This document shows, piece by piece, positions 5,104-58,890 of a stretch of DNA of 64,000 nt. The notes under the pieces were generated by a model. That model was not told the DNA's origin. It searched no databases and saw only the letters and a list, made by a program, of their open reading frames with translations. Position 1 is the first letter of the stretch; every line of letters starts with the position of its first letter. Position numbers and translations under genes: made by a program. Source of the stretch: Isurus oxyrinchus (lineage: Eukaryota); the NCBI GenBank assembly GCA_026770705.1, contig JANJGN010000100.1:1054001-1118000 (forward strand), in the 5' to 3' direction.

Positions 5104-5138
5104 TTATTGTCGCATGAGGCGATCACATTCGGTATAAG
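5104..5138 (+). promoter_or_regulatory. Putative degenerate promoter module of copy 1
   Basis: TTATTG-TCGCATGAGG-13 nt-TATAAG, about 70 nt upstream of ATG 5209, with the same order and similar spacing as the paralogues. Confidence 0.35.
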
Positions 5139-5208
5139 TGAGGTGTCATAGGAATGAATTGCAGCCGATGTGTGGTTGTTGTCTCCAGCACTTCGTTTCT
5201 CGCAGAGA

Positions 5209-7554
5209 ATGCACGCCGCGGGAAACAATCCAGTACTTCTTATTTACTATCCTATTCTACGTGTTGTCCGTGTGCTGGGTATGTTATTACAGAAACTTTT
5301 TTGTTTTAGGACATTGTCGCCTGCACTGAGTGTGTGGATTTTCAGCTGGTTTGTCTCATTGTGTTATCCAGACTTTCTTCCACTGCATCCTCAGCTGAAT
5401 GAGCTATGATCGAACGCCATTCAGGAACGGTGATAATGGCATGAAGCTGATGTGCTGGCTGAGGACTGAGCGATCAGGGAGAGATAGGGGAATCTCAAAC
5501 GCTATTGTGAATAAAGAGCAAAGGGTGAGATTCAAGGAATGGATCGGTTGGAGGCTTAGATGAATCAGAAAAAGAGTGTGCGCAGGTTTTGGTAACCATG
5601 ACTTGCTGTCACTTGCGATCCTTCACAACTGAAAGAAAGGCGAAAAGTTGATTATTCAGCTTTGAATGAGGCGAAGAATCCTTATGGACCAGGACAGTTT
5701 TGAGCTTGTGTGAGTCAGTGTTGCTTAAGGAGAAGATTGAGGGTTTGCTTCTCGTGGCGCATGGAATTGAAAGTCTATCTTCGGGTGTGGCGACAAGAGC
5801 AGTTTGAGGAGTTCTGGATGTCTTGCAGATATCTGTGATCATAACAGGAAGGCTGGGATTTCAGCTGGAATGCATGTGGAATGACGGGAACCCGGAGACA
5901 GTTGCTGAGGAAGGAAATGCGACTGTGAAAACCTAATTTGTTATTGCACATGTGAACAAAGATGAGATGCTCCTAATCAAGCGTCATCGACCTAAAACTT
6001 TAACTCTGTTTCTTACCACAGGTTCTGGCTCACCTGTCGACCATTTCCAGAATTTTTGGCTTTTTCTTCAGATTTCCAGCATCCATTATATTCTGCTTTT
6101 TAAAATTGGAGGTCCAGGTATTCTGTCTTCGGACAAGATCCCCGATATTAAGTAAATGGGCAGAAGTCAATACACATTCTCCTATGGACAGAGTTGCTGA
6201 AATTCTGTCTACCTTTTCAATATGTGTTTAAGTTTCTCAGACTGCTTTTTCAACCCCGAAACTGAAAAAAAATGAAATATCTGAGAAAACATTTTCTGAG
6301 GTGGGTATCTAACCAGCATGCTTATTGAAAAATGATTTCGCAGTCAGCCAGTTACTGCCACTTCGTGAATGATTTTAGTGGTTTTATTCAGGAAACTGAA
6401 CGTAGAGCTCCAATTTACTTTCTCAATCCAATGATCCTCAATCATTGCCACGATTCGACCATGCTCCTTTACATTAGCTGTTCCTGTTAACCTTCCTCAG
6501 CAACTGTCCACCTCCTACCAGAACAATCTCTCCATTAGGAATTATCAAACCCGTCTTGTGTGGTTCAAAACTAGAGGCATAAGATCAAAGAAACCGTTGA
6601 TGGGAGCAATGTTCAATTTTACTGATTGTTTATTTCTCTTTCTTACAACTAACTTTGTGACCATTGTGATCCTGTCCAGAGGATGATGCGGTCTCTCCAG
6701 ATGCATCACGCTTTACCTAGTGCCCATGGCAGTGACGGATCTCCTGGTCATTATCACCGCTGTGATATTAAACAGGGTTGTTGGTATATATTTCAGTTTC
6801 AGTGCGCTTTCCACCACTCCGGGCTGCACAGTAAGCTTTATCCTAACTTATGCTGCCACAGACAGTTGTGTGTGGTTGACGGTCACTTTCACTTTGAGAG
6901 GTTTTTCGCTATTTGTTGCCAGAAACTGAAAACGAAATACTGCAGTGAAAACGGCAGCGGCGGTGATAGCAAAAGTGTGCGCCCTGAGTTGTTTCAAAAA
7001 CACGCCGTCTTATCTCCCTTACGAACCGATGTTCCCAGTGGACAATGTTCAGTGGCTGTGCAACATCGAAGAAACATTTTAATCATCTCTTGGATGGACA
7101 CTGTATGACTGGCTTGACAGAATTTCAACGCCGTGCCTTCCATTATTCCTGTTGTTACTACTGAATGCTGTGACAGTTAGACATATTCTAGCGGCCAGTC
7201 GATTCCGAAGGAGACTCCAGGCCCACAGCAATGGAGCCAATCAGCGTGACCCAGAGATAGAGAATAGGAGGAGTCCATTATGTTACTCTTCCGTACTTCG
7301 GGCAGTTTCATCCTGTTATGGATGGTGTACGTTGTAAGCTTCTTTTATGTTTAAGTTACAAGCAATAATTATTTTTCAGGTTCCAATATCAATGACCAAA
7401 GATTCATCCTCCAAGAAACAGGTAATACTCTTCAATTTTTAAGTTCCTGCACCACCCCGTGCATTTATGCATTAACAGAGGGTAAATTCAGGCAGGAGTT
7501 AAAAAAATGGGATTAGGTATCCACTTTATTATTTTAAGATTAAGGAAACAATGA
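5209..7554 (+). pseudogene. GPR139-like GPCR pseudogene (copy 1): exon 1 5209-5278, exon 2 ~6649-7554
   Basis: Exon 1 MHAAGNNPVLLIYYPILRVVRVL-G|GTATGT. The acceptor is mutated (cttacAA|ctaac at 6647-6648). In-frame TGA at 6684 within SRG*CGLSRC, with frameshifts near the DRF motif and ICL3. Recognisable segments: MAVTDLLVIITAVILNR, DSCVWLTVTFT, DPEIENRR. Confidence 0.9.
5400..5930 (-). mobile_element. Probable L2-like LINE RT fragment in the intron of copy 1
   Basis: Decayed RT-like reading on the minus strand (F......S.ET.L.......LFAFLS). Family assignment is by resemblance only. Confidence 0.4.
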
Positions 7555-7959
7555 TAATCATACAGTCGTGTTTTTTTGGCCTTATATTAAAACAGAGTTT
7601 TCTCTCCTGTACTATGCGCTCTGGGTGATACCATGTCCAAAATCATCAGTCGGATAACATAGGCCAAGTTCGCATCCATGTGTGAGAAAGTGAATCAAGG
7701 GCCTGATTTGCTGCGAGTAAAATTCCATGTTTAATTGGACGACCATATTGAACGACCGATTTGTTTAATCATCATGAACAAGACAGCACATCAAATACCC
7801 ACCCATCGTTCACTTCAGACTCATCATCAGTTCATGGCTGGAACCATGTGGACGTGAAGGGGTGAGTCCAGTTCATTCCGCAAAACTCTCAAAAACGTCA
7901 CTCTAGAAATCTGAGCAATAGAGATCTGGGTATTGTGATTGGAGCCTCAGGGCAGCAGT

Positions 7960-12302: not shown

Positions 12303-14900
12303 TTCCCCTCATTGAAAAATGAACAATCATAATTTTAACAAATAGCTTCATTTTTAATAATGGATCTTGCAGTATCTCCTCTGCTATCCCACTATTACTT
12401 AACCACATGCCTGCATTAACGTAACAATATATCTACATAACTCCTTTGTCTCAGCAGGAATCATTCCAGTTCAGTACCGTTGTTTTAAAATATCCAATTT
12501 TCCCTTTAATTTCAAAGTCCTGGGAACATATCTTCAATCAGATTCTCTGATCCAGTGACAAGTATTATTTGTAGACTTAATGGTTGCATTAATGAACTCC
12601 ACCTGATTGGCTTTGCACTTTTGTGTCGAAATTTGTCCAGAAGCTTTAAACGGTTGTGGCTTGTAAAAGCATTATTTTCTGATGAATGGTTTGCTGCATA
12701 TCTTTCAAAGTGCTGCAGTAGTAACACGAAATCCAACGTCTATTTTCAATAATTGAATATCTTCTCTGTTGAGTGTTCAAATTCCGTGAAAAGCATACGA
12801 TAGAATTTTCAATTGCAGCCTCATCTTTATGTAACATGATATTCCTACATCGCTTGCATCAACAGCCAACTTAAATTACTTGGACAACAAGGTACTGCCA
12901 AAACCGGTGTCATATTAACTACAGTTTTTAAAGTTTCAGGTGCCAGTGTCCATTAAAACCTCTTAATTTTTTAATACTTCAGTCAGTGGAGCAACCAGAC
13001 TGCTAAAATTTTGTACACATTTCTGGTAAAACCCACTCAGGTTGAGAAATTTAAAGCTTCTCATTTTGTTTTAGGCACTGGGAAATCCACGAAAACCTGA
13101 CTCGCATCTCTTGGAGCAGCCTTGCCATGTCCAATGTTATGGCCTAGATGCATTGCTTGTGCTTTTGCGAATTCACTTTTAGTCAATTTCATTACAGAAT
13201 TTGCATCTGGTAGTCGAGCAAAAAATTCTTCTGGATGTTGGAAATGCTCCTACCACGTCAGACTGAAAACAATTAAGTCATTAATATAAACAGCACAATT
13301 ACTTAAACGTGCCATTTTTTTTGTCAGACCTTGCTATGGTGCAAGTGCATTCTTCATACCAAATGTTGTGACTTTTAACTGATATAATCTATTTGGCTTC
13401 ACAAAAGCTGATATCTCATTTGCTCTCTCCAATAAAGATACTTGCCAATACCATTTTAGCATGTCATACTTTGTGATAAATTTTGATTGCCCCATTATCT
13501 CAATGCAATCTTGCAACTGTGATATAGGATAGTAATCGACTTGTGCCACTACTTTCAGATTTTGATCGTGCACACACCTTGTTTGTGTTCCATCTGGCTT
13601 TTGTACCAGTACAAGAGGCGAACTCCAGTTACTGCAACTAGAATCAACGATATCATTGTGAAGCATGAAATCAATTTCTTTCTGTACGTCTGATAGTTTT
13701 TCCAGATTTGATCTATAAGGTTGTTACCTTATTGAAGACGAAACATGTACAGACACATCATATATATATTAACACGTCCTCACCAACCTATTCACACAAA
13801 TAGGTTTTTGTGACTGAAAGACCTTCTCTGAATCACTCAGGATCACAATTACATTTTCATGTACTCCTTCATCAACCAGTTTGATTAGAGGAAAATCAAT
13901 TTCAGAGCCCATCACTTCCAGCTATTTCTCATCATCCACCATCACTAATGACTCTTTTTGTTCTTCATTAAATAGCTTAAACTCACTCAATGCCTTTTCA
14001 ATCCTGTTAGTCCTATTGAAACTTGTCTTTAATAGGTAATTTAGCACTGGTAAGGGAACAAGCACTTCTCTTCAGCAATTAAAAAATGCAAGGTTTAGCT
14101 TTCTTATCTGACTTCCCTTTCATCACTTTCTGTGATAAATTTAAATGTTCCCCAACCAAGTACCATGCTTTGTCTAATATCTCCCTGAGATTAGATACAT
14201 AATCCAGGAGAGTGGATTCATGATTTTGAACCACCAGTTTCTCATGAATCAATTTCAGTGGTCTCCTTACTTCAGGACCATTTACTACTTGAAAAGGAAT
14301 AAAAACGGTCGAGGCATTAGGAGCGTCCCAGTAACAATTAAAATAAAATGGAATTCCTTTGTCTCAATCCTGCAGATAATGTTTTTTTTTCAAGTTACAT
14401 GCCGTCTTTCCAAGTCGCTTGTGACTCGGGATGATAAGCTGTTGACCTACGTTGGTTAATTCCCAAACTGATCATTACTTCCTTAAACAGCTGCGACAAA
14501 ATATTTGAACCCTGTTCTGATTGTATTTACTTAGGTAAACTAAGTCATATAAAATGCATATAACTCTTCCAGAATCTTCTTAGCTGTAATATTTTAAAGA
14601 TATCCCCTTAGCAAATCTGGTAGACCCATACTTTATAGTCAGTAAGTACTGATTTTGACTTTTTAGTCATTGGAGAGGTCTTACACAATCAGTCATGGCC
14701 CTAGCAAATGATGCTTCAAATGCTGTTATTTGGAATAAAGGCCATGCTTGTGGTTCTCCTTTCATCTAACATGTGTAACATGTTCTACGGATTTTAATGA
14801 CATCCCTATGCAATCCTGACCAATAGAAACGCTTCTGTGCTTTTGCCTGTGCCTTTCTAATTCCTCATTATCCCCCCATTGGAATTTCCTGAGCCACCCT
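11539..14900 (-). mobile_element. Decayed Gypsy LTR retrotransposon of Gmr1 type (INT-RT-RNaseH-PPT-3'LTR)
   Basis: Order on the minus strand: integrase Zn-finger (..RFYWSGLHRDV..TCYTC, ~14770-14900) and core (NQYLLT, QSEQGSN), then RT (WSSPLVLVQKPDG, FGMKNA, AVYINDL, ~13250-13700), then RNase H (FKLAVDASDVG ~12845-12880, YFSRNLN..RYSIIE), then PPT GAGGGGAA at 12303-12310. Confidence 0.85.
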
Positions 14901-21222: not shown

Positions 21223-23518
21223 TCAATAGATATTGCATGCCATTTTTAACTCCTCCCTGAATTTGCTCTGGGTCCATGCATAAATAAACGGATTGATGCA
21301 GGAACTTAGAAGCTGCAGCATAAGGTCACGTTCTTCTAGAATATATGTTGATTTGTTGAAAATTGAACCTTCTAAATAACTAGCGCTCACAATTCGGACG
21401 TAGAGGAAATTTATAACAACTAATACACCTAACAGGATGAAACTGCCCGAGATTGTGAAAAGTAAAACGATGGACTTTCTCCTCTTCTCCATCTCTGGGT
21501 CACTCTGATTTTTTCCATTGCTGTGGGCTCGGAGTCTTCTGTGGGCTCGGCTTGCCCTGCCAATGTGCCTGACAGTCAGCACATTGAGTAGCAAAATACG
21601 GATAAATGCGAGACAAGGGATTAAAGCAGCATTTACGCTAACTTATGCAGCCCATCCGGGTGAAGTACAAGATACTGATTTCAATTTGCTGTACCAGGGT
21701 ACAATGTTAATGATAACAGAAGGTTCACAAGCTAAGTACAAGGGAACTTGTTTGGCACAGTGCAAAGTACAGACAGTTCCTATGACCACAGCCGCTGTTT
21801 ACTTCGTGCAATATTTGCGTTTCAGAAATTGGCAACAAATGGCTACAAATCAATCAAACGTGAAAGCGACTGTTAACCAGACAGATGAATCTCTGATACC
21901 ATATATTAAGACAAGGCTGAGAGCAAAGATCAGAGTGATGGAGAGAAAGCTGAATGGTAAATATTTACTTACAATCCGGTTTAATACCATGGCCATGATC
22001 ATGATCAGAAGATCCGTCACAGCCATGGACATCAAGTTGTAAGTGATACATCTGGAGAGACCACATCTTCCTCGAGATAGGATGACAATGATTGCCACGT
22101 TAGCTGTGACAGAAAAATATAGCCAGTGAATATGTGGTTGAGACAAATGAATATAGGACAAAAAACGCTGGAGAACTCACAGACCAGGAATCAATTATGA
22201 AGTGAAACATATTTAGTATTCCAGGTTTATGATGTTTCTGTTCCACTTGAGAAAAAATAACTTCATAAAACACAGCTAATCGTCAACACTGTACTGTGCT
22301 CCCTGCAAGAATATGGGCTAAGTCATATAGTTAACATTTAAATTCCTACTTCGTGACACATATATATGAAACAGAATTATGCCCCTGCATACTACCTAGA
22401 GATTAGATAAGGGAAGGACAGGACAGAATATTTGAAAATCGAAGAAACACAACGTTACTTCGACCTGAGGATTGGGCAGTAAATTCCACGGATACAAAGA
22501 TAAAATTCTTCCCATGGTGGCAGAATGAAGGATAATAACATTGAATAGAAAGGAAGTAGCTTGTTAGGAAAATTAAATATACCTGGATCTCCTGATTGAA
22601 AATTACCTGAAGTTAACAAAGCAGTGCTTCATGGCAGCGAGAAAAGCTACCCTCGTTTATAGATTCAGTTGGAGCTAAGTTGGTAGAAACATCGCTTCAG
22701 TGTCAAAATGTCATTGCTTCAGCTTTGAGAGCATGCTCTGCTGCCCCGGGTGCCACATTTTGGCAAAGCCGGTAAATGGAGGGTCCGTAATTTAATATGT
22801 TATGCAGGTTAATAAGGTACACGCTTTTCTAATTCCAGACAAAACGTAAAAAAAAGAGATAATGCCGTCTGTGTGTGTATAATGTATGTAAGAGAGATAC
22901 AGTCAGAATGTAACAATGGACCTACGCATGCAGTGCCACAAACACAATAGAAATATGCTTAGCAGTTTGAAGTATGTGATACTTCAGTATTAATGATGTC
23001 AGTCATAACATAAAATACATTTGAAACGTAAAATTATGGATGTAAGCAGAAGTTATCCAACTAAAGTATTGAAATATTACTGGCCAGTTAAAGGCAGTAC
23101 ATTGTTAAATTGGATAAAAATATACAGGCAATGGGAGGAAACCATTGTCAAGGGCTGGAATGACAACATTAAAATGAAGGAACCTCACCAGTGATGATAT
23201 GCAATCATGTCAGTAAATTGAAAAATTAAATGGAAAATTCTTCCTTAAGTTGAAGGAAGAAAATGCTCTAAAAGGCAAAAAAAGGGAGAATATCGCTGTA
23301 AAATTATTAGATTACACTGTTAAACGGGAGAACGAATATGATGGAAAAGTACTGATTATAAATGAGAGGAATCATGAACTCATATCAAAGAAAAGAGAAT
23401 TGATTAAACAATAATTCTCATAACTAATATCTAATGAGAATGGTTTACCTGGAATCCCGATCGCTGCAAGAATGGGGTAGTAAATGACAAAAACCAGATC
23501 TTTCGGTAATCCATGCAT
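21223..23518 (-). pseudogene. GPR139-like GPCR pseudogene (copy 2): exon 1 23518-23449, exon 2 22103-~21223
   Basis: Exon 1 MHGLPKDLVFVIYYPILAAIGIP-G|GTAAAC. Intact acceptor tttttctgtcacag|CTAAC. The DRF Arg codon is TGA (21850-21852), and two further in-frame TAA stops follow. The C-terminal half reads DPEMEKRRKSIVLLF...MLQLLSSCINPFIY...KFREEL. Confidence 0.92.
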
Positions 23519-23569
23519 TTCTATTTCCAGCTACGAGTGTGTTCTGCCTGACAATTAAACATCTTCACA

Positions 23570-23604
23570 TTTATATCTCAGTCCAGGCTCCAGGGAGATA
23601 ATTA
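23570..23604 (-). promoter_or_regulatory. Putative promoter module of copy 2
   Basis: The gene strand reads TAATTA-t-CTCCCTGGAG-12 nt-TATAAA, about 52 nt upstream of the ATG. Confidence 0.55.
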
Positions 23605-23739: not shown

Positions 23740-25230
23740 CTCAAAAGGCGGTGGCAATGGAAATAGTGGATGAGTTGGTGGTGAACTTCCAAAATTTTGT
23801 AGGTTCTAGAACAGTCCAAGCATATTGGAGGTTGGCAGATGCAAACCCACTCTTTTAAAAGAAGTGAGGAATAGGCAAATTATTAAACGCTGGTTAGCAT
23901 AACTTCAATAGTAGGGAAAATGCTAGAGTATATTATAACGAACGTGATAAAAGGACACTTAGAAAATATTAATGGGGTTGGATTAAGTCAGCGTGCATTT
24001 ATGAAAGCCAAATAACTTTCGACAAACCTACTGGCGGTTTTTGAGGACTTTAGTAGTAGAACAGATAAGGGAGAACCAGTTGTTGTGGCATATTCGGATT
24101 TTGGGAAAGCTTTTAATTAAGTCCAACGTAAGAGGTTAGTTTTCAAAACGAAATCACATAGGGTTGTGGGTGATTTATTTGCATGGATTGAGATTTGTTT
24201 AACACACAGGATATCGATAGTCGGAAAAAAAGTATTTTTCGAGCAGCAGACAATGACTACTGGAGTACTGCAGGGATCAGTGCTTGGGGCCCAACTATTC
24301 AATGATTTGGATGAGGGAACCAAATGTAATATTTCGAAGTTTACTTAGGACTCAAAATTTGGTCAGACTGTGAATGGTGAGAAGGATGTAAAGAGGTCTC
24401 AAGGCAATTTAGACACATTGAATGAGTGGCATATACATAGCAGATAAATTATATATAGGGTAACTGTGAAGCTGTCGACTTCGGTAGGAAAAGCAGAATG
24501 GCAGATTATTATAAATATAGTGATAGATTGGGAAACGTTGATACACAAAGGGACCTGGGCGTTCTTGTACACCAGTCGCTAAAAGCAAGTATACAGGTGC
24601 TGCAAGCAGTAAGCAAGGCAAATAGCATAATGTCTTTCATTTCAATATCATTTGAGAGCAGGAACGTAGATGCGTTGATATATCTGTACCAGGCCTTGGT
24701 GAAACCACACCTGGAATATTGTGTACAGTTTTGGTCTCCTTGCATAAGAAATGACATACTTACCATGGAGGGAGTGCAGCAAAGGTTCAGCAGACTGATT
24801 CTTGGGATAGCAGCATTGTCGCTTAGGGAGAGATTTGGTTGCCTAAGCCTGCACTCAATGGAGTTTAAAACAAATTGAAGCAAATGATATCCTGACATGG
24901 CTGGACAGGTTGCATGCAGAGATCATGCCAAATCTGGCTCTGGTGTCTAGGACAAATGGTCACAATTTTAGGACATTGGTGACAAAGATGAGGAGGAATT
25001 TCATCTCTCCAAGGGTGGTGAACATTTGTAAAGTTCTACCACAGAAGGATGTGGAGGTCAAGCCACTGATAATATTTAAGAAGGATACAGGTGGAATTCT
25101 CGACTTTAAAGGCCTCAAAGGACAGGGGGATAGAGCGGGAGCCTGACGATGAGGATCAGACATGTTCATATTGAAATGTAGAGCAGAAAAGGAGGACCGA
25201 ATGATATTCTCCCGTTTCAATTTTCAATTT
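23740..25230 (+). mobile_element. CR1 LINE RT and 3' UTR, decayed
   Basis: GVLQGSVLG, ISKF, QRDLGVLV, LVKPHLEYCVQFWSP, RRNFISPRVV. Confidence 0.85.
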
Positions 25231-32600: not shown

Positions 32601-33241
32601 TTCTTCAAAAACCGGCAAAGCATCTCCAGTGTAAAGTATCTCCAGCATCTCAATCTCTTTTGATGGTGGTTAGTTGTACCAATCTGATCTCTGTCAGAGG
32701 CCCAATGCACTGTAATATTGCACAGTGCAATAAGGAATGGTGGAAAGGGTGCACAGGATTTAATAAACACTGGAAAATTATTAGCTTTTTTCCAGAAGAA
32801 CAGATACCCGTTGATCCAGAAAGTAGAACAACAACATCCCTTCATTTGTTGCCTGGGTGAACATGAATTAACCTCCAACAAATTTTGAGATCGAGCTCAT
32901 ATAATAACCTTCATCTGTAGCTGAAAAACTCAACGTGGAGCAGATGGAACTTTATTGTTGAGTGATTGATAACTTGATGTTTAATGAAGATCACAGTGAG
33001 GACAGATTACTATAAATGGGAATGTTTGTGACACTGCTAAAGGGAGGGCACCTGTTAGTAAATTGCGATATTTGTGTCAATGCTACAGCAAGGTAGCAAG
33101 TGAGTACATTAGGATATTCTTTCATCTGCCCCATTATGAACATCTTGCCACTAATTCAAAAGTTTCATCCTTATGTTTACACAAAGAATGCCAGAGATAT
33201 GGTCATAAGACCAACATATTGCAGGACGTGTTTTACTGTAT

Positions 33242-34143
33242 TTATTGAACCAATTTACCAATTAGAGTGATAGGATATTCCAATATATTTCTTAACTGTT
33301 CCCTAAATTTCCTCTGGGTCACGGCATAAATAAACGTGTTTGTGCAGCAACTCAGCAACTGAAGCATATTTGCACTTTCTCGGAGAATATATTTGGGGTC
33401 ACTGAAACTTTTGATTTCATAATTGTTTGTAAATCGGTCATGAAAGAACTGTACAACATACGTTATCCACAACAGGATGAAACTACTCGAAATAGCAAAG
33501 AGTAAAATGATGGACTTTCTCCGATTCTCCATCTCTGGGTCATTCTTATTCTCTCTATTGCTTTGGGCCCAGAGTCGCCTGCGGGCTGTGTTTACCAATA
33601 GAATGTGCCTGACCGTCAGCACATTCAGCAAAAGAATCAAAAAGAAAGAGAGGCAAGGAGTTAAAATACGGTCTGACCAATCAAACGCTGTCCACACAAC
33701 TGAAGTATAACGTATATCCTTCAGTCTGCAATACCATGGTACATTGTCCAATATGTAAATCGGTTGGTGTATAAAATACCAGGGAATACATTTAAAACAA
33801 ACCAGTGCACAAACCATTCCTATCACCACAGCCGCCGTTTTCTCAGTGCAATATTTTGTTTTCAGCTTCTCATAAGAAATGGCCACAAACCGATCGAATG
33901 TGAAAGCGACTGTTAACCAGACGGAACTGTCTCTGGTTGCATGAATTAATGTAATGCTGAGGCTGCACACGGGAGTGATGGACATAAAACTACCTGGAGA
34001 ATAAATGCCAGGAATCCGATTTATTATGACTGCAGTGATAATAACGAGGAGATCAGTCACTGCCATGGACACCAGGTACTGAGTGATACATTTGGAGAGG
34101 CCGCACTTTCCTCGGGACAGGATCGCAATAGCCACCAAATTAA
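33242..34143 (-). CDS. Intact GPR139/GPR142-like class A GPCR (copy 3), coding exon 2 (TM1 to C-terminus)
   Basis: Polypyrimidine acceptor ...ctctctatcttccctgcag|TT AAT TTG at 34144/34143. Uninterrupted frame to TAA at 33242. 7TM motifs: VNLVAI (N1.50), MAVTDLL (D2.50), PVC, SSVWLTVAFTFDRF (compare GPR139 TSIWITVPLTIDRY), IPWYF, TPC, FILLW, ANMLQLLSCCTNTFIY (compare ANMLALLNTAINFFLY) and helix 8 QRKFREQL. Confidence 0.93.
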
Positions 34144-36589
34144 CTGCAGGGAAGATAGAGAGGGAAGTTACAGAATACTCACCCAGCAGAAGTATTACAT
34201 TGATTTGAATTATATAACTCTCCCCCTTGTTATGCAATGGGGCAGGGGTCTTTGCAGGTAAAACAAACATATGTAAATCAATTAGGAAAATAAATAGGTT
34301 AATAAAATGCAAATATCAATACATAAACATAGGCGATTGTGTACTGACATATGAAAATGATTAAAAAGCAATGCATTCATATTTCAGATAATGTATTACA
34401 ATTGCATAACCAACAGAATAGCAAATTGAAGACAATTCAAAACAGCTTCATAATCACTTTTACAACGAAGGAAACAAAGTTGGAGGAGACTTACATCGTT
34501 GTTCGCCCAGAGAGTTAGTTGAATGGATCAGAGCACATTACATTACAGCTACAATAGACCAGCATAATGATTTTGGCTTCACATGCTCAACTGAAACTGT
34601 TTACATGTTGTTTTGGAACTGATGAGATCAGTCAAGAAAGGATTATTGTCCAAAGAAAAATTAGGGCTATTGGCCCCATTTTAATCCAATGTTTAACTTT
34701 CATCAATACAACGTGTTTATAGCATTGCATGTGCAAAGCAGGACTCCTGAATATTTCTAATGTCCGCATAAATTATGAGCTATGATCGTTGAGTCAGGTT
34801 TCAATAATTCCCGAACTAAGAGCACTCTGAACTGAAAAAGATTTGACAGCTTGAAATGAACATTCGCATTTTAATATAAGAACTCTTCCAAGATTGTTCA
34901 TGAACAGTGTCACAGAAGCAAATGGATAAACTATTAAGTCTGAGAAGGTAAAGTTCGATATACATTTCCCGACCTGTGTTTCTAAATGGAAGGTTGACTG
35001 GCCTGGCTGCTGTACAGAAAATCTATAGTCCTTGAGGGAAATGAGAAATCTGCACTCTAGAAAGAATTTCCATGTCTTGAGCGAGGATTATTTGAGGATC
35101 AAATAATCAGAAATGGAAATTTCAAGGATGGCACAAGGATCAGGAACCGCTTTTAGAGTGAAAGGAGTTTTCAGGTGAAATGTCCCACAGCAGAGAATTT
35201 TCAAAGAGAATTCAGAGCTAAGGTGAATGGAAGGAATAGCGAGACTGGGATGCATGTTCCTGGACATGTATTATTCATCACTGCTGTCACTGAATTCATT
35301 GCTCTGATTGGTCAAACCAGAATGAGCTGCAACTTACCTTCATTAAGTTAATTACATCAAACCAAATGATTACTTCACCTCTGAATTTATCAAGTCAGCA
35401 ATTGTTAATTTCTTATATTATTTAGCCAAACAGTTGGTGATTAAATTTTCATACATTCCCCGAAAAGACGCATTTCAGAACCAAGCCTCTAAATTAACTA
35501 TATACTAAATACAGCACATTAACAATTAATGTCTGAACAATAGCCATTCCTAGCCATTCTGACAGCATCCGGTCAGAATTGATACACTTTTTATTTCCAG
35601 TTAATTCTTACAAGCATGCCAATTAATTAATGCCCCATCTGCTTTTTCACATTCTTTTCAGTTCTGAGATAGTCAGGAGGTCTGGTTTCGCATCACCATC
35701 TTCCACTTACAGGATTTGGAACATTCTCACTTTAATGATGGGATTGCATTTGAAATCATCACCGGCGTCCTCATATGTTAAACAACACATTAACTGTTCA
35801 TGGTTTTTGTTTCCACAAACGCCAAACATACAGACCATTCAGTTGCAGCAGGGGTAGTAAGTGTATTCACTCCATGTACCGGCGCGGTTTCATATCACTT
35901 ACTGTACTGTTTAATTATAGTTAACAACTAAAATTAACTACATTACAAAATGATCGAGTTAAATAGTGGAGCAAGATCGAGAGCCGAATGATTTCCTACG
36001 TTCCAATGAAAAGAAAATTAACAACATGAGTGTTAACATTTTCAATCCTCTCCAAACCAGCATATATTTTGTGTGTCGACGCATTTCATGAAATCACGCC
36101 TTGTTAGTCTCACTCTAATTTTAATTTCATTGCACGATCTTTTAGATTTACGCACGAGAGGAAAGTAAGATTTTATCTACACAACAGATCCTTTCGGTAT
36201 CATATCCCTCTCTTCATACAGCATGCTCCTTGTCCTGGGATTGCCAATTATGCTTTATGCCGTGACATCACGAGGGAGTGATCTGATGGGGAAAACCGTA
36301 ATAATGAACTCATTCAGTAGTGGGATTCAACTCGTTTTATTAACAGCATTTGGCACCACGTCCTTCCATGCGGCCAGTTGAGCCAAAAGTCCCCAATGAC
36401 ATACTCCCATTATCATTGTAATGAATCTGCGCTGCAAACGCCCCAGCCCCTAAACCTCCGCCAACTGAAGCCGATTATTCCTTTCTGAGCTTCGCAACTT
36501 GGAGCTGAATTCAGTCTTAGCAGGCTTTTTGTACTCTGGAAACTGACAGCATTCATTCAGGTAGCGATTAGCATGTGGCAATAATTTAC

Positions 36590-36659
36590 CTGGAACAGCG
36601 ATAGCTGCAAGGGCAGTGTAGTAAACGGCATATACCAAACCTCTTGGCGGGGCGTGCAT
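36590..36659 (-). CDS. Copy 3 coding exon 1: MHAPPRGLVYAVYYTALAAIAVP(V). The spliced product is 323 aa.
   Basis: ATG at 36659, 70 nt, ending CCAG|GTAAAT. The phase-1 junction G+TT gives Val in frame with exon 2, and 70+902=972 nt. Homologous 70-nt exons precede three paralogues. The intron spans 34144-36589. Confidence 0.88.
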
Positions 36660-36727
36660 TGTCAAAGAGAAGCAGCGCTTAGTTGTTGGGATCCTCCACG
36701 TGCACTGTTCGACATTCAAAGAATCCA

Positions 36728-36764
36728 TTATTATACCTCATGTCAATCCCAAGAGACATAATTG
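36728..36764 (-). promoter_or_regulatory. Putative proximal promoter of the intact receptor: homeodomain site, O/E(Ebf)-like site and TATA-like box
   Basis: The gene strand reads CAATTA-tg-TCTCTTGGGA-11 nt-TATAATAA, about 70 nt upstream of the ATG. Confidence 0.55.
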
Positions 36765-37067
36765 CATATTATCAACATTTCTATAAATTAGTCACTGAAC
36801 AAACATGTTTGTTGACATAACCACTTACATTATGTACAGTCGCTGAATAAATAATTAAACGTAGTCAATTATATCTCTAGTTTTGATGCATTCAAGTGCA
36901 TAGAAACAATGTCCCAATTATTTAAAGGTAAAGTTGATAACTTGAAGGAGTAACACTTGCTTTTGCAACTTCAATCTCACTCCAAAACTATTGACTCTTA
37001 CGTACTGTCTGAACTCTGGCCATGAGATTCAGTCATTTGCATCAAGCAGTATTTAAAATGAACGATT

Positions 37068-43769: not shown

Positions 43770-44030
43770 GAGATTGCAAATAGGCTAATAATAAATAGGA
43801 TAAAATTAGCGTGGAATACACAGTTGGAGTAATGCCTTTAAAATGAATGCAGAAGATTTTGAAGGGAATTCACAAGTAAAATTGGACTGCGATCTGAAAG
43901 GAGAAAAAGTGCATGGTTAGGAGGATAATTCAGGGGAGTGGGACTAGGTGGAATGCTCTTTCGGAGAGCCAGCGCAGACTCGATGGGATGAATAACCTCC
44001 TTCTGCACTGTATCGGCACTATGACACTTT
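43770..44030 (+). mobile_element. CR1 3' end
   Basis: ggagagccagcgcagactcgatgggatgaataacctccttctgcactgta tail. Confidence 0.7.
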
Positions 44031-45057: not shown

Positions 45058-45096
45058 GAATTGCCCCTCTAGCGGTGAGCATTAGATATAAATGTG
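45058..45096 (+). promoter_or_regulatory. Putative promoter module of copy 4 (degenerate HD and O/E sites, clear TATA)
   Basis: GAATTG-CCCCTCTAGCGG-11 nt-TATAAA. The context AGATATAAATGTG is identical to copy 2. Confidence 0.45.
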
Positions 45097-45154
45097 TATG
45101 CCACTCAGCTTAAATTAGAGGGAAGAAGACAACAGCATAGCACTTTCACAGAAA

Positions 45155-47878
45155 ATGCATGCTCCAGGAAATGGACCAGTATTTCCCATTTATATTTCTG
45201 TTCTTGCTGCTTTCGGTGTTCCAGGTAAACTTCTGGCGAAAGTGAATAACTGGGCAGTCAATCTTTAACTGCGCTATCTATGAGTTGTTCATTGCTTACC
45301 ATAGATTTCATGCATTTTCTCTCTGCTGCTTTAAGAGCATTGCATTTCATTACTGCAGTACGACTGCTCTAAACTACGTGCCTTCTGTGGTCTCTTTTTG
45401 AAAGATAGGTTTATGTCCGTCTCTGTAATAAAGGACCCAGTTAGGATATTAATGTCCTGTGGATTATTGTAAGGAAATTGTGTTCTATGACATGCTGTTG
45501 AACGTTCAAGACGCATTATGATACATCCATGTCTACAAACTGCGCTGGAATTACATAATTTTATTCACCCCTCACAGTTCCATGGATATTCCTCTTGCGT
45601 TGACGATTTTCCACTGCCAGCTTTTCTTAAATGTCAACGGCATAGATAGATGTAGACGATAGAAATGCAAAAAAAAATAAAACAATGGTATTAATATCTT
45701 GGACAATGTAATGCACTCTGTGTAAAGGGGTTTAAACTAGGTTAGAAGTACTGAAGCAGGTTGATATGATTCTTTTCTTTCTGTTGTTGTTTCCATCTTG
45801 ACAGAAGTGCTTGTAACATATTGAGCATGTTCAGCAATTTTTGTTTACACTCCTCACATTTGCAGTTGCTACTTTTGCATGGAGTGACGTTATCATACCA
45901 TTATAATCAACAAGATTTTATGAAGATCGTGAATAGATCCTGATATTCTTGATAAACTTTAGCTGTTTCAGCAACTTTGTCAATAAATGTATGTTATTGT
46001 CCAGGCTGTATGTGACCTTTCAGAGAAGAAGTTAATTCTACTCATACTCAGGCAATTTGTTTCCCTGAAAAATATTGTCGAATTATCCTGTTCCACCAGG
46101 AGGCAGTAAGTCTGAACTCCGCTCCAAATCCCGAGTCTGTAAAAAAGGTCCGTATTCCCCGTGCATTGTTGGAGAATTGCAACACCATCAGGTCTGCCGT
46201 TTTTCTGAGGAAATGTTCAGTGGAGGTCGTCCTGCTCCTTTGATTACAGGACTCCGTGACAATGTTGGAATATCATATTTCTCTATCCTTGAGCCAGAAA
46301 CAATCATGCACCGACAACGTATGTCAGAATAAAATGCAGAGGAATCTCTAATCTCCCTTCTTACTGGAGCAGGATCTTGCTGGCGATAGCACCTCGCTAT
46401 AATGGATCGAATCGACTGCAGAAGAACTGCTGACCCTCCTTGACTTCGGTTCACAGGAGTAGAGGCCGATTACAATCAACATGATTGGTGCAAGACTTTA
46501 TTTTCCTCAGCCTTGATCCTCAATTACATTTATTATTGCCTCCTTATTAACTATATTTTAATTCCTGTCATTTGCTTTATTCTTTTTTTTTATTCCAGTT
46601 CTTCCGCAGTTCTTATAGTCAGCATTTACTATGGTTAAAAAAGAATCACCGTATTGAATTTTATTATAAGTACTTTTGCGCCAATGTAGCTATTTCATCC
46701 TTGTAATACCTTTAAAAACTATGTTCCATCCACTTGGATAATTTCTAAAATTTGCATGAATATAAAAGAAAGAAATGCTATGTTTTACTAGATGTTCGGC
46801 ATTCCAATTTTATTTGTAAGTAATTTGTTTTGTTCGACAAAGAGTAATACATTGGTAAACCAATCAGCGTCAGTGTTGATCAGTGCAAATTTTATCCCAC
46901 CCTGCCGCCAAAGTGATGTTGCAGCTGTGACTGTGATCATTAACACCGGTCCTTCTCTCTGTCTTATAGCTAACTTAATGACGATTGTGCCCCTATCCCA
47001 AGGAAAATGCGGTCTCTCCAGATGCATCAGTTCCGACTTGTCATCCATGGCAGTGAATGACCCTCCTTGTCATTATCACTGCTGTGATATTAAGCTGGCT
47101 TCGCGCTATTTCCCACTTAGTTTCCTGTCCAGTACCCCTGCCTACAGCGTGGTTATTGTCCTCAACTATGCTTCCAGAGACAGTTCTGTCTGGTTAATTG
47201 TCGCTTTCATCTTCGATCGCTTCATGGCCATTTGCTCCCAGCAGCTGAAATTAAAATATTGCACTGAAAAAAAACAGCAGCTGTGGGAAGTGGAATGGTC
47301 TGTGTGCTGTTCTTTTTGAAAAACGCCCCGTTTTACTTTATATATGAACCTATAGGTGTAATTAATAACGTACCATGGTACTGCAAAATAAGGAAAATCA
47401 CTTATGTTTCGGTGCAATGGAGAGTATTTGACTGGTTGGACCGTATTGTAACTCCATGTCTTCCTTTCATCCTGATCTTTCTGCTCAGTTTACGGACTGT
47501 CAGACATATTATATCAGCCAGTCGAGCTCGGAGGAGACTCCGAGCCCAAAACAGGGGAGAGAATTAGAGTGACCCGGAATGGAGAGCCGCAGAAAGTCCA
47601 TCATTTTACTTTTCGCCATCTTGGGCAGTTTCCTTCTGTTTTGGTTGACATATGTTGTAAATTTCCTATTTGTACAAATTTCAGGTAATGACTTTTCGGT
47701 AGGTTCTAACTCCAACGACCCAAAATCTATCTTGCAGGAAAGCGGGTACATGCTGCAACTCTTGACTTCCAGCACCAATACGTGTATATATTCAGGGACC
47801 CAGACAAAATTCAGGGGAGAGTTGAAGGACGCAGTCAAACACGCCTTCAATGTAATTAAGAAATGGCACAAAAACTGA
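45155..47878 (+). pseudogene. GPR139-like GPCR pseudogene (copy 4): exon 1 45155-45224, exon 2 46970-47878
   Basis: Exon 1 MHAPGNGPVFPIYISVLAAFGVP-G|GTAAAC. Acceptor tctctctgtcttatag|CTAAC. Compensating frameshifts at ~47060 and ~47100, a frameshift at the A-run 47267-47274, and TAG at 47565-47567 plus a 1-nt loss in DPEM. Retains RDSSVWLIVAFIFDRF, NVPWYC and STNTCIY. Confidence 0.92.
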
Positions 47879-47927
47879 AGATAGCTATAAAAGTTATTGC
47901 AGTTACCCTGCCTCCGTTTCTAATTAC

Positions 47928-47933
47928 AATAAA
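47928..47933 (+). terminator. Candidate polyadenylation signal of copy 4
   Basis: AATAAA 50 nt after the stop at 47878. Confidence 0.35.
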
Positions 47934-50312: not shown

Positions 50313-51369
50313 GCCACCACCAAACACATCTTCCCTTCACCCCCCTTATCGGCATTCCGTAGGGATCGCTCCCTCCGGGACACCCTGGTCCACTCCTCCA
50401 TCACCCCCTACTCCTCAACCCCCTCCTATGGCACCACCCCATGCCCACGCAAAAGATGTAACACCTGCCCTTTCACTTCCTCTCTCCTCACCGTCCAAGG
50501 GCCCAAACACTCCTTTCAAGTGAAGCAGCATTTCACTTGCATTTCCCCCAACTTAGTCTTGTGCATTCGTTGCTCCCAATGTGGTCTCCTCTACATTGGA
50601 GAGACCAAACGTAAACTGGGCGACCGCTTTGCAGAACACCTGCGGTCTGTCCGCAAGAATGACCCAAACCTCCCTGTCGCTTGCCATTTTAACACTCCAC
50701 CCTGCTCTCTTGCCCACATGTCTGTCCTTGGCTTACTGCATTGTTCCAGTGAAGCCCAACGCAAACTGGAGGAACAACACCTCATCTTCCGACTAGGCAC
50801 CTTACAGCCTTCCGGACTGAATATTGAATTCAATAACTTTAGGTCGTGAGCTCCCTCCCCCATCCCCACCCCCTTTCTGTTTCCCCGTTTTTCCCTCCTT
50901 TTTTTTCCCCTATAAATTTTATACATTTTTCTTTTCCCACCTATTTCCATTATTTTTAAATATTTTAAAATCTTTTATGCTCCCCCCACCCCCACTAGAG
51001 CTGTACCTTGAGTGCCCTACCATCGATTCTTAATTAGCACATTCGTTTAGATAATATCACCAACTTTAACTTTAACACCTATGTGTTCTTTTGTACCATT
51101 GTCGCTGACATCTTTTGATGATCTGCTTCTATCACTGCTTGTTTGTCTACACAAGCACCTCTCTCTCTCTCTATCTCTCCGCCACCCCCCCCCCCCCCCC
51201 ACACACACACACACACACACCTTAAACCAGCTTATATTTCAACTCTTTCCTGGACTCGAAATCAAGTTCTGTCGAAGGGTCATGAGGACTCGAAACGTCA
51301 ACTCTTTTCTTCTCCGCCGATGCTGCCAGACCTGCTGAGTTTTTCCAGGTAATTCTGTTTTTGTTTTGA
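50313..51369 (+). mobile_element. Young 5'-truncated Penelope-like element with an intact GIY-YIG endonuclease frame and 3' UTR
   Basis: Open frame 50313-50849: AFRRDRSLRDTLVHS...CPRKRCNTC...NLVLCIRCSQCGLLYIGETKRKLGDRFAEHL...GLNIEF*. The 3' end reads tgctgccagacctgctgagtttttccagg. It interrupts a CR1 element. Confidence 0.9.
51265..51303 (+). ncRNA. Minimal type I hammerhead-ribozyme-like motif in the Penelope 3' UTR
   Basis: Stem I AGTT/AACT, core CTGTCGA (variant of CUGANGA), stem II GGGTC/GACTC, then GAAAC-GTC with palindromic ACGT as stem III. Confidence 0.6.
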
Positions 51370-55920: not shown

Positions 55921-55959
55921 ACAAAATAGGTATGTATTCTATGTATTCTATAGGCAACC

Positions 55960-56368
55960 AAATATTTGGATAGGTGGAACATATCTGAGGAAGATTAAGC
56001 AGAGGTGCAAAAATTGCTCATTTCTGATGGCATGTTTCCCCGAGCTGGTCTGTCTAGAATGAGAGGACACCGTGTCAGAATAAGGGATGGGCCATTTAGG
56101 ACAGAGATGAGGAGGAATTTGTTCACTGAGTGAGTGATGATTTTTGGAATTCTCTAGGCCAGAGGGCCGATGAGGCTCAGTCCTCGCTTATGTTCAAGCC
56201 TGAGATCGATAAATGTCAACATCTACAAACATCAATGGATACGGGGGTAGTGCAAGAAAATAGTGCTGAGGTAGAAGATCAGCCACGATCGCATTGATTG
56301 TTGAAGCGGAGCCTGGGGGCTGAATGGTCAACTCCAGTTTCAACTCTCTACATTCTTATGTTGTTATG
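55960..56368 (+). mobile_element. CR1 3' end
   Basis: gagatgaggaggaattt...gggggctgaatggtcaactcc...ttcttatgttgttatg. Confidence 0.75.
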
Positions 56369-56469
56369 GGAACAATTGGGAACTTTTAATGTTGTAATTT
56401 CTGTTCTATTCAACAGATTCTCTCAAGCCTACTTACAGCTATTTAACTAAGACGACAAAGTGCTGAAAG

Positions 56470-56830
56470 GCGGTTAATTTGAATACAAAGAGGGCGGACA
56501 GGAGGAAAAATTGAAAGAAGCAGACTGGATAGAAAAACGTAAAAGGGAAGACGAAGGAAGGAGGTAGGGGAATAATTGGAAGAGGCAGAGTGGAGACAAT
56601 GGATTAAATGGAAGATGCAGGGACAGAAAGGCGGAGTAAGACAGAAGAAGAAGAGGGAACCTGTAATGGATAAATGGAGGTGGAAGGAGGGATTTTATGT
56701 GTAAAAGCGAAATGGCACAGATGAGAAGAGGTGAAAATTGGAAGAGGTAGCTTGGAGAAAAAGGGCAACTTAAAGCATGCGAGTGGAGAGAGCAGGTTAA
56801 GTAGAGTAGACAGAATTGAAACTTTGGAAT
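56470..56830. repeat. Purine-rich (GA) low-complexity tract
   Basis: Strong A/G bias on the plus strand. Confidence 0.7.
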
Positions 56831-58029
56831 AAATGGCAGTCGCTCAGATCGTTGCTTATTGGCTTCTGCTATTGCCGTGATATGAAATTGAACATAAATA
56901 ATTTCCCTGAAGAATTTTAAGGGCGTTTCTTTCGTGATCCCAAATTGGCAATGTCACGATTTGTGAGGAGAGATGACAATATTACAAGAGAATAAGAAAC
57001 CCACCCCCCCCCGCCAAAAAGTAGCATTTCCGGGAGTTGTTTCGAAAATCTAATTGGTACAGATGTCCGGGTTTTACTGTGGTGGTTGAGTGGTGGGGGG
57101 GGGGGGGGGGGGCGGGGGCAAGGGGGTTGGGGTGTTGGTTGGGGTGAGGGGATGGTATTGAAGATGTTGGATGTCTTTATCTGACGAGGCATCTTGTTTT
57201 CTTGGGTTATAGAGGAGAATCGGAAGCTACTTGTATCCACAGTGTGGTGAATTGGGACAAAATATGGCGGAAACCAAAGTTAAAATACTGTGTAGTGTAC
57301 AGGACATAAGTGTGGGAAGTCGAGTAGTGTCCCATGGCCTGTACAATGCACTGCGAGTGTAATATCGGAACAGTTCAGCACTTACCATCCGAAAAATTCC
57401 ACTAATCCTGCCTATCACGTGATGGCCAGACCTTATGCACTGCAATCCTGGCCTGTCAAGTTTGGAGGGAAACAGTCCAGTTAATGAATAATCAGCAACA
57501 AATGCGTTAAAAAATGGCAATGGGTCGTCAGCTTGCAGAAGGCTATGAAGGGGTATAACAGTGTATATTTCCACAAGGAGGAATATGAGTAATTGCTTGG
57601 CAGTACTGATCCTGAGTGTTGCTGAGAAAAGAGAGAGGCTGTCGAAACTTTCATTTTTGCACTCATCAGGGCAAACACAAGAATGTCGAATTTCAAGGGG
57701 AACAACAAGGTGTAATGCATGAGCTAAAGCGTTGTGATTGGTTGTCAAGTCAGTTCTGATTATTCTAGACGTTGTCATGGCTGCCACGCAACAAGGCAGG
57801 ATTAAGCAGCGCCTTTTCCTCTAATTATTCCGCATTGCGCTAAACCAAAAACTGTAGCTGCTGGAAATGTGCAGCCAAAATTAGAATAGCCTGGCTGGTC
57901 TGGCAGCTCATGTAGAAAGCGGCAAACATAGCTAAACTTTCGGGTCTCAGGGACATTTAAGGTAATAAATGCTGCCCTTATCAGTGAAGCCCGCATTCCA
58001 CGGTCTACATTTGAAAAAGAGAGTCATTG

Positions 58030-58890
58030 AACATTCCAGCACATGCCTTGGTCCCTTTTGGAACTTACGCTGGGTGTATCCATAATTACACTTGATGCAA
58101 CGGCTCAGGAGAAGCTGCATTGCCCCACTTCCTCCAGCATTAAAGTTGAGGTAATTTACTTATAAGCTGTGAAATATGAAATATTGCAGTTAGTTAATAC
58201 ATAATGCTTACTATCATACTGCCCACAGTAGGAAGAGACTGCCTGAAGAGTAAAATGTTGGAATTTATCTGGCTCTGCATCTCTGGCCCCTTCTCATTCT
58301 CCGCATTGTCTTTGGTGCCAGAGAGTCCAGCAGATTTCACAGGCAGCGAATTGAATGCATGGAACGTTTAAAACGTTGAGATGAATAATACAAGAAATGG
58401 AAGTAAGAAGATAAAACGTGATTTATCTAGTGGGTTCTTACTCCTGCAAATGAAACGTAGAAGTGTAATTCGATACTTCAAAATGATGCACTTTGTTATT
58501 TACCCTCACTGATTCATGCACAATGTACCTCAGGTTTATTTTTGTTCAACTTTTTAAAGCACAAAAACGAACATATGGGCACTTCTCCTAGAGAAATATC
58601 GCAACTTCATATTCGGGCAACGAACACATATGTAGTCATCGAAGGCGAGAGTGACGAATAGTCGGACAGAACAATCCTCTGGATGCAGATAGAGCATCGT
58701 GCTGACGTCACTGGTAGAGTGGTGAATGCCAAAGTAACCCACAGTTAAACGCCACTCACTGAATGTAAGAAGCAGCGATAAAACCAGTAGATTGGTCGCT
58801 GCCGTGAATGACGAGTGATGCGCCTGGAAAGAACGCTGCCCCACGAAAAAGCAGCGCAGAGGACAATAATTATCATTTTTTGGAGACCAG
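58030..58890 (-). pseudogene. Ancient, highly decayed GPR139-like GPCR relic (copy 5)
   Basis: Collinear fragments across frames: VLSRRIT (~GLSRCIT), AATNLLVL (~AVTDLLVI), DCSVRLFVTLAFDDYICVRCPNMKLRY (~DSSVWLTVAFTFDRFVAI..KLKTKY), ENEKGPEMQSQINSNILLF (~ENKNDPEMENRRKSIILLF), SLFLLWA, and TQRKFQ at ~58060-58075. Confidence 0.78.

Follow-up and report, generated by a model that had tools for sequence, protein, structure and literature searches.

GPR139 is a class A G-protein coupled receptor (GPCR) of the seven-transmembrane (7TM) type; it and its close homologue GPR142 are mammalian orphan receptors that respond to aromatic amino acids. According to the accessible part of PMC7318219, it is encoded by a two-exon gene, and the human protein is 96% identical to that of mouse, 92% to that of chicken, and 70% to that of zebrafish. 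The accessible text of PMC5430874 gives F109 (3x33), H187 (5x43), W241 (6x48), and N271 (7x38) as the residues required for activation by agonists, L-Trp, and L-Phe, and R244 (6x51) as a hydrogen-bond partner, and describes the receptor as lacking the cysteine pair of transmembrane helix 3 (TM3, 3x25) and extracellular loop 2 (ECL2, 45x50). GPR210A and GPR210B are orphans of coelacanth, gar, and some fish that are named beside GPR139 and GPR142 and are absent from mammals; the terms "cartilaginous", "chondrichth", and "elephant shark" have no occurrence in the accessible text of that source, which thus covers no cartilaginous fish (PMC6504862). The subject of this study is a stretch of 64,000 nucleotides (nt) from Isurus oxyrinchus (contig JANJGN010000100.1 of assembly GCA_026770705.1, positions 1,054,001 to 1,118,000 of the forward strand), referred to as the window. 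With a probability of roughly 0.6, it is read here as an old five-gene tandem array of a chondrichthyan-expanded family of orphan class A GPCRs that is a plausible chemosensory candidate. No published description of an expansion of "probable GPR139" genes in chondrichthyans was found in the literature searched, which excluded most subscription journals and supplements.

The five-copy array and its intact gene

The region of about 5.2–58.8 kb of the window holds five paralogous rhodopsin-class 7TM loci in the orientation +, −, −, +, −. A preliminary description, made from the letters of the DNA, had claimed this number and this mixed orientation, and both were confirmed with tblastn and a family hidden Markov model (HMM). 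The tblastn query was the 356-residue stop-to-stop open reading frame (ORF) at 33242-34312 (−), the longest ORF of the window. It matched 6630-7504 (+) in two frames, with identities of 53% (E 1.6e-62) and 46% (E 3.5e-17), 22101-21244 (−) with 56% identity (E 6.8e-93), 46852-47863 (+) with the match spread over three frames (E 1.5e-73), and 58706-58010 (−) weakly (E 1.4e-5). The family HMM, run against all six-frame fragments of the window, returned the same five places and no sixth copy; its next-best match, at 10378-10280, had an independent E-value (iE) of only 0.12. The copies, called c1 to c5 by position, are as follows.

Copy c1, 5133..7560 (+): pseudogene; exon 1 at 5209-5278, beginning MHAAGNN and followed by a GT donor; intron at 5279-6648; exon 2 from 6649 to about 7560.
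Copy c2, 21223..23603 (−): pseudogene; exon 1 at 23518-23449 with a GT donor; intron at 23448-22104 with an AG acceptor; exon 2 at 22103-21223.
Copy c3, 33245..36763 (−): intact gene, by its ORF, Pfam match, splice sites, and homologues.
Exon 1 of c3, 36659-36590 (−): 70 nt of coding sequence, followed by GTAAAT with the GT donor at 36589.
Intron of c3, 36589-34144 (−): 2446 nt, phase 1, GT..AG, with a polypyrimidine-cag acceptor (cag/TT at 34144/34143).
Exon 2 of c3, 34143-33245 (−), including the stop: 896 coding nt.
AATAAA of c3, 33246-33241 (−), overlapping the stop; a second AATAAA at 32956-32951 (−).
Copy c4, 45059..47875 (+): pseudogene; exon 1 at 45155-45224 with a GT donor; intron at 45225-46969 with an AG acceptor; exon 2 from 46970 to about 47875.
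Copy c5, 58007..58793 (−): deeply decayed relic of exon 2 in three colinear HMM fragments.

One copy is intact and four are pseudogenized to unequal depth, as had been proposed, and the counts of frameshifts, stops, and splice-site changes bear this out. Copy c1 has three to four frameshifts, four in-frame stops, and a splice acceptor changed from AG to AA. Copy c2 has three in-frame stops and essentially no frameshift (a single 1-nt gap close to its 3′ end), and c4 has four frameshifts and one stop. Copy c5 has at least nine stops and many frameshifts; its HMM fragments lie at 58793-58560 (iE 3.7e-6), 58313-58236 (iE 0.07), and 58132-58007 (iE 0.005), and no exon 1 was found for it. The first coding exon of c1–c4 is 70 nt long and is followed by a GT donor in every copy. 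In all four readable copies, the coding sequence is split into two exons by a phase-1 intron located two codons ahead of N1.50.

In the gene model of c3, 70 and 896 coding bases make 322 codons, one fewer than the 323 residues given earlier; this is arithmetic on the model, as the exons were not joined and the searches used either exon 2 alone or contiguous genomic translations as the query. Exon 2 holds 896 of the 966 coding nt (92.8%), in agreement with the earlier estimate of about 93% in one exon, and the N-terminus is indeed very short, with only about 5–8 residues ahead of TM1. The sole Pfam match of the c3 ORF is 7tm_1 (E 4.6e-18, 66.1 bits against a cut-off of 30.5), with no other match at E ≤ 0.01. 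Homologues of other species begin with a 23-residue peptide, MH.PP.G..YA.YY....A..VP, and this peptide is encoded 2.4 kb upstream of the large exon of c3, at 36659. The ATG at 34270, in the upstream extension of the ORF, was considered as the start of c3 and rejected, as the homologues open with the exon-1 peptide and the acceptor lies at 34144. Ahead of the true acceptor, the frame remains open over 56 codons at 34312-34144 (−), a stretch that includes this ATG. The same stretch contains a GTGAGT...CAG segment of 39 nt (34182-34144), the removal of which would preserve the frame; it is taken as chance because the homologues use the distant exon 1.

The c3 protein is 73–78% identical to the best-matching members of its family, shares their N-terminus, and scores 504.9 bits with the family HMM. 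Among 112 family members, 73 positions are conserved at 90% or more, and c3 has the consensus residue at 70 of them. Its departures are L77M, C113S (3.55), and P189S (5.50), and 34% of the annotated members depart at least as often.

Constraint on c3 was assessed with two DNA runs of a close relative, X1 and X3, aligned to 33100-36900; the runs are regarded as DNA because they cover the c3 intron. Both carry another organism label than the window, and runs labelled with the window's own species contained almost none of the words of this locus. In exon 2, which these runs cover incompletely as the contigs break at a pile-up on the TM3/DRF segment, 6 of 724 bases (X1) and 6 of 726 bases (X3) differ, or 0.8%. 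For the intron together with the upstream flank, the differences number 88 in 2717 bases (X1) and 97 in 2793 bases (X3), or 3.2–3.5%. Three of the five listed coding differences are synonymous, the remaining two being I to L and E to K, and all four listed insertions or deletions are outside the c3 exons. The pile-up itself consists of about 130 further contigs of 90–95% likeness stacked on the conserved TM3/DRF segment; its depth does not equal copy number, and it indicates that there are many paralogues. By these comparisons, c3 looks to be under purifying selection and appears to be the sole functional gene of the array.

Size, distribution, and origin of the family

A homologue search with c3 returned 2343 proteins at E ≤ 1e-3 among 8000 scored candidates. 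The best 120 of these 2343 are from sharks (70), batoids (49), and an unnamed source (1), and include 28 proteins of Heterodontus francisci and 19 of Heptranchias perlo. The best identity to c3 in the protein collection is 77–78%, so proteins of the window's own species are absent from it. An exhaustive search of 50%-identity representatives gave 765 matches at E ≤ 1e-3 and 111 at E ≤ 1e-30, and ten representatives that were looked up belong to elasmobranchs (nine) and to Callorhinchus milii (one, with 50% identity). The family is very large, was found in chondrichthyans only in the searches made here, and spans sharks, rays, and skates, with at least one member in a chimaera. NCBI names nearly all of these proteins "probable G-protein coupled receptor 139", and a few GPR15-like, TRH receptor-like, or CCR3-like; the look-alikes in the ESM Atlas are likewise "probable GPR139" chordate clusters. 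The family signature consists of the N-terminus MHxPxxG..YAIYY, SRGxCGLS, FDRFVAIC, PWYC, DPEMESRRKS, and NTxIY. When tested for membership of this chondrichthyan "probable GPR139" expansion, c3 fits the signature, the HMM, and the clade in the tree. The earlier suggestion of a lineage-expanded multigene family that is not the GPR139/142 orthologue is thus upheld by the 2343 matches, the elasmobranch origin of 119 of the best 120, and a score of 33.7 bits to human GPR139.

A maximum-likelihood (ML) tree was built with IQ-TREE under LG+C20 PMSF from 50 rows and 329 columns and rooted on amphioxus, with support given as UFBoot/SH-aLRT. The chondrichthyan family forms a clade (96/84) with c3 inside it. 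Its sister consists of sturgeon and amphibian genes (100/100), and the joint clade is supported at 100/99. The next lineages out are a clade of Latimeria, Odontesthes, and an unnamed UniRef sequence (100/99), and an Engraulis gene; the amphioxus, coelacanth, and teleost "GPR139-like" lineages fall outside the chondrichthyan plus amphibian/sturgeon clade. Within the family, c1 stands beside P0102 of H. francisci (91/93), c2 beside P0113 of Heptranchias perlo (99/93), and c4 with P0115 of H. francisci and P0312 of Leucoraja (100/100), while c3 belongs to a seven-row clade of sharks and rays (100/97). The Callorhinchus protein is nested within the family with weak support (86/68). The pseudogenes sit on longer end branches, exceeding those of their intact sisters by a factor of 2–5.

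In a tblastn search of all stored proteins, each of c1–c4 is matched better by proteins of other species (62–77%) than by its neighbors in the window (45–57%). Together with the tree, this indicates that the array is old. The c3 and c4 lines are placed by the tree before the split of sharks and rays, and c1, c2, c4, and c5 are best read as lineage-specific deaths of old paralogue lines. The birth-and-death evolution proposed earlier therefore stands for the deaths, which are local (four pseudogenes), and needs revision for the births, which are old because c1–c4 are each closer to genes of other species.

Amphibian/sturgeon orphan: The closest matches outside chondrichthyans are genes of a salamander (34% identity) and of Latimeria (33%), along with two teleost genes and amphioxus "GPR139" genes. 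A search with the salamander protein found one match in each of 20 amphibian species, including frogs, a caecilian, and salamanders (66–74%), one sturgeon match (46%), and then chondrichthyan proteins only (32–33%). Judging from the tree and these searches, the family is co-orthologous to a conserved orphan receptor that was recovered once per species in amphibians and sturgeon. This orphan (P0235 of Pleurodeles, P0294 of Xenopus tropicalis, and P0310 of Acipenser; "probable" or "putative GPR139" at NCBI) is 32–34% identical to the family and shares with it the cysteine pair, W6.48, and N7.39. In contrast to the chondrichthyan family, it has P6.50 and the pocket residues Y3.32, F3.33, K6.51, and K6.55. 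Overall, the identity of the family and its evolutionary picture are held with high confidence. Even if the family is not chemosensory, a conserved single-ligand receptor, as seen in amphibians and sturgeon, would have become a large diversified repertoire in one lineage.

GPR210A and GPR210B: These are likewise orphans related to GPR139 and GPR142. The P0238 protein of Latimeria and its kin represent the next lineage out in the tree and may correspond to GPR210A or GPR210B.

Relation to GPR139 and GPR142

Exon 2 of c3 matches the human GPR139 chain 7vug_R with 33.7 bits (E 2.1e-7), barely ahead of CCR2 (30.8 bits), AT2R (30.6 bits), and GALR2 (30.3 bits). A profile of 32 diverse family members, searched against solved structures, finds GPR139 best at 82.8 bits (E 1.9e-22), followed by NTSR1 (61.8 bits) and NMUR2 (57.4 bits). 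As the profile singles out GPR139, the label "GPR139-like" is fair at the superfamily level.

The pocket of GPR139 was mapped onto the family by HMM alignment, with residues 321, 399, 453, 456, and 483 of the chain being F, H, W, R, and N at an offset of 212. At the positions of F109, H187, W241, N271, and R244, c3 has H, D, W, N, and Y, respectively, so that two of the five are kept. Among the 112 members, the first of these positions is Y in 67, N in 14, and F in 11, and the others are D in 87, W in 108, N in 83, and Y in 80. Sensing of amino acids in the manner of GPR139, which had been suggested, is not supported as stated with two of five pocket residues kept in c3. The TM3 and ECL2 cysteines are present in 108 and 107 of the 112 members, and c3 has both.

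GPR139 and the family have in common the class A 7TM fold, W6.48, N7.39 (7x38), and the lack of P7.50; two exons are described for the GPR139 gene, and two coding exons are found in the family. They differ in ECL2, which is 12 residues longer in the family, and in T6.50 and N5.58, which are found in the family. Moreover, GPR139 is a single conserved gene, whereas the family is multi-copy, with five copies in the window and at least 28 H. francisci proteins among the best 120. Judging from these alignments, the family is not the GPR139 orthologue. The wording "sister family of GPR139" is not supported as stated; the direct sister in the tree, which holds no true GPR139 or GPR142 sequences, is the amphibian/sturgeon orphan.

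Candidates for a true GPR139 were sought among the relatives of the family. P0260, P0266, P0238, and P0235 were tried and found not to be GPR139 (E 3.7e-15, 2.1e-15, 1.8e-18, and 2.6e-13, respectively). No true GPR139 or GPR142 occurs among the 150 listed 50%-identity representatives, and a search with the amphioxus protein P0259 for true GPR139/142 returned nine amphioxus proteins only. A large class A family with a diversified pocket sits in public annotation under the misleading name "GPR139", and the label merits correction.

Ligand pocket and intracellular face

Residue variability was measured as column entropy over the 112 members. The mean entropy is 0.82 for the inner halves of the transmembrane helices against 1.52 for their outer halves (Mann-Whitney p 5e-12), and 1.20 in the intracellular loops and 1.73 in the extracellular loops (p 0.0016). 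The nearly fixed parts are SRGxCGLS of intracellular loop (ICL) 1, the DRF motif and ICL2 ("KYC"), DPEMESRRKS in ICL3 before TM6, F6.44, W6.48, NTxIY, and helix 8. Such a near-fixed intracellular face suggests one shared G-protein or arrestin partner, and the variable outer halves and extracellular loops, with the strongest variation at the pocket positions, suggest a repertoire of receptors for many different small ligands.

The pocket was compared at 18 positions that we take to be the canonical ones of class A, in what we take to be their Ballesteros-Weinstein numbering. Five amphibian orthologues, with an overall identity of 62–80%, have the same residue at all 18 positions. In 125 chondrichthyan pairs of matched overall identity (66–80%), a mean of 5.7 of the 18 positions differ. 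Positions 3.29, 3.32, 3.33, 5.39, 5.42, 6.51, 7.35, and 7.39 show 9–12 kinds of residue each. The c3-type pocket has R3.36, D3.37, D5.42, R5.43, Y6.51, and N7.39 and is unusually polar and charged; these charged residues deep in the bundle suggest small polar or zwitterionic ligands. The family as a whole is probably a ligand-diversified receptor repertoire.

The core clade has invariant N5.58, T6.50, and T7.50 (in NTxIY) together with R3.36, D3.37, D5.42, and R5.43 (P0002 positions 94, 95, 181, 182, 197, 251, and 293). Class A receptors usually have Y at 5.58. Divergent members retain P6.50, and P0113 and the read-throughs of c1 and c2 have P7.50.

The proposed course of events is as follows. 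An ancestral receptor with one conserved ligand, which would persist in amphibians and sturgeon, may have multiplied in chondrichthyans. Its duplicates would have retained one intracellular partner while the ligand pocket diversified. The genes follow one plan: a 70-nt first coding exon for the short N-terminus and the greater part of TM1, then a phase-1 intron, then a single large exon.

Upstream regions of copies c1 to c4

The following elements lie upstream of the first exons.

Copy c1 (+): TATAA at 5133-5137.
Copy c2 (−): AATTA at 23603, O/E-like TCCCTGGAG at 23596, and TATAA at 23575-23571.
Copy c3 (−): AATTA at 36763, O/E-like TCTCTTGGG at 36756, and TATAA at 36735-36731.
Copy c4 (+): AATTG at 45059 and TATAA at 45087-45091.

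The TATAA of c1, c2, c3, and c4 is located at −76, −57, −76, and −68 from the ATG, respectively. In three of the four copies (c2, c3, and c4), an AATTR motif precedes TATAA at a distance of exactly 28 nt. An O/E-like TCYCNNGRG motif lies 21 nt upstream of TATAA in two of the four (c2 and c3) and is degenerate in c4 and c1. The promoter layout is truly conserved between old paralogues.

Possible chemosensory function and its alternatives

In the accessible text of the respective sources, cartilaginous fishes are described as relatively poor in GPCRs (PMC8455134) and as having a mean of 43.8 olfactory receptor (OR) genes, yet many sensory neurons (PMC10869828); a figure of 8.7 ORs is also given (PMC10869828, PMC8455134, and PMC11979771). 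The family studied here shows two features of chemosensory repertoires. One is a large lineage-specific expansion with a pseudogene-rich tandem array, in which four of the five copies in the window are pseudogenes. The other is a diversification that is concentrated in the pocket, with a mean of 5.7 of 18 positions differing against 0 of 18 in the amphibian orthologues, on an assumed list of pocket positions. ORs, trace amine-associated receptors (TAARs), and other lineage-expanded class A sets resemble the family in their expansion, pseudogene-rich tandem arrays, variable pocket, and conserved intracellular face. The FDRFVAIC motif at the end of TM3 also resembles what we take to be the OR motif. 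ORs and TAARs would differ from the family in their TM6 and TM7 motifs. An assignment of the family to ORs or TAARs by sequence was rejected, as Pfam finds 7tm_1 only and no OR-specific profile and there are two coding exons.

Use of the family in chemosensory cells of the nose, taste organs, or solitary chemosensory cells is the favored reading of its function; it is unproven and is put forward tentatively, at somewhat less than even odds. It is doubtful that the family would amount to a fifth, so far unrecognized, major vertebrate chemoreceptor family, specific to chondrichthyans with many genes in each genome and derived from a single receptor for an endogenous ligand that persists in amphibians and sturgeon. 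Such a family would be expressed in olfactory or other chemosensory cells from a promoter of homeodomain, O/E, and TATA elements, and its charged pocket (R3.36, D3.37, D5.42, and R5.43) would be tuned to small polar waterborne cues, such as amino acids or amines. Expression in sensory epithelia, if found, would alter the accepted view of how sharks sense chemicals and make this a new family of vertebrate chemoreceptors. If the reading is true, the good sense of smell of sharks with only ~44 canonical OR genes would be explained.

Several points weigh against the preferred reading or weaken the argument for it. The c3 protein is without P5.50 and C3.55, both of which are found in more than 90% of members, and most vertebrate chemoreceptor genes do not share the plan of two coding exons. 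Sites of the O/E and homeodomain type also occur outside the control of olfactory neuron genes, and their assignment here depends on assumed consensus sequences. The entropies and residue counts come from a sample of 112 members leaning to c3-like ones, and some contrast between outer and inner halves would be expected for any set of GPCR paralogues. The pocket positions and their numbering are assumed, the numbering having been anchored on motifs with the TM4 anchor guessed, and the 50-row tree lacks true GPR139 and GPR142 sequences. On the side of expression, no RNA run carrying the c3 locus was found in the sequencing-run search. The presumed-RNA run X7, aligned to 33100-36900, gave five short paralogue-like pieces of 90–95% likeness, one of which crosses the exon-1 donor unspliced, and run X10 gave no pieces on the same interval. 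Finally, the 50 most olfactory-specific genes of the catshark contain no GPCR, according to the accessible text of PMC11979771.

The last of the adverse points also favors the main alternative, in which the receptors serve internal signals, such as neuropeptides, metabolites, or immune and inflammatory mediators, in the manner of chemokine receptors or MRGPRs, without any external sensing. The nearest solved relatives, namely GPR139, NTSR1, NMUR2, and the PrRP, TRH, and ghrelin receptors, are all brain or gut receptors for peptides or metabolites, and GPR139 itself is restricted to the central nervous system in the accessible account of PMC7318219. Moreover, the bony-vertebrate counterpart is conserved, occurs once per species, and has a frozen pocket, which is the profile of a receptor for an endogenous ligand. 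On the other hand, a single species has dozens of paralogues, their pockets are diversified, and four of five local copies are dead, all of which is unusual for receptors of endogenous ligands, and the very short N-terminus may speak against large peptide or protein ligands. In addition, we know of no expansion of a matching ligand family. An internal role for the family is possible but considered unlikely.

Two further explanations concern the nature of the locus itself. The copies could be the true GPR139/GPR142 locus of this fish in a simply duplicated form, as the NCBI names, the best match in the Protein Data Bank to GPR139, the two exons described for both (accessible part of PMC7318219), and the absence of P7.50 from both would have it. 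This explanation is close to refuted. The score to human GPR139 is a mere 33.7 bits, though zebrafish and human GPR139 are 70% identical (same part of PMC7318219). Only two of five pocket residues are kept, the TM3 and ECL2 cysteines are present, and ECL2 is 12 residues longer. Closer relatives exist in amphibians, sturgeon, coelacanth, and teleosts, and they are themselves not GPR139 (E 2.6e-13 to 1.8e-18). Alternatively, the family could be mostly decaying DNA that segmental or transposon-linked duplication has spread, with c3 intact by chance. Four of the five local copies are dead, transposon relics lie between them, and c3 is off consensus at P5.50 and C3.55. Against such decay, 34% of annotated members depart from the consensus as often as c3 or more, the c3 exon is about 4-fold less diverged than its intron, three of its five listed coding changes are synonymous, and c3-type proteins remain 73–78% identical across sharks and rays. 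In addition, the pseudogenes have longer end branches, 2–5 times those of intact sisters. Introns and promoters are kept in all four readable copies, so these are not retrocopies. Chance survival of c3 in a decaying family is considered highly improbable, and the old array of an expanded orphan receptor family, with chemosensory use as its candidate function, remains the preferred reading of the window.

Other elements in the window

Transposon relics are present at 13334-13666 (−) and 50520-50849 (+), between receptor copies. One of the two is a reverse-transcriptase fragment (RVT_1, E 7.6e-5) and the other a weak GIY-YIG match (E 0.0039), both under the Pfam cut-off. Some fused NCBI gene models of the receptor family match these regions of transposon relics between the copies. 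The ORFs at 24498-24878 (+) and 60271-60585 (+) have "...P.LEYCVQFWSP..." in common and no Pfam match, which suggests two copies of one repeated element. The ORFs at 4042-4383 (−) and 56917-57240 (−) each contain a proline run in a similar "PQP...PPPPPPPP" context and may represent an element, either repeated or of low complexity, that flanks c1 and c5.

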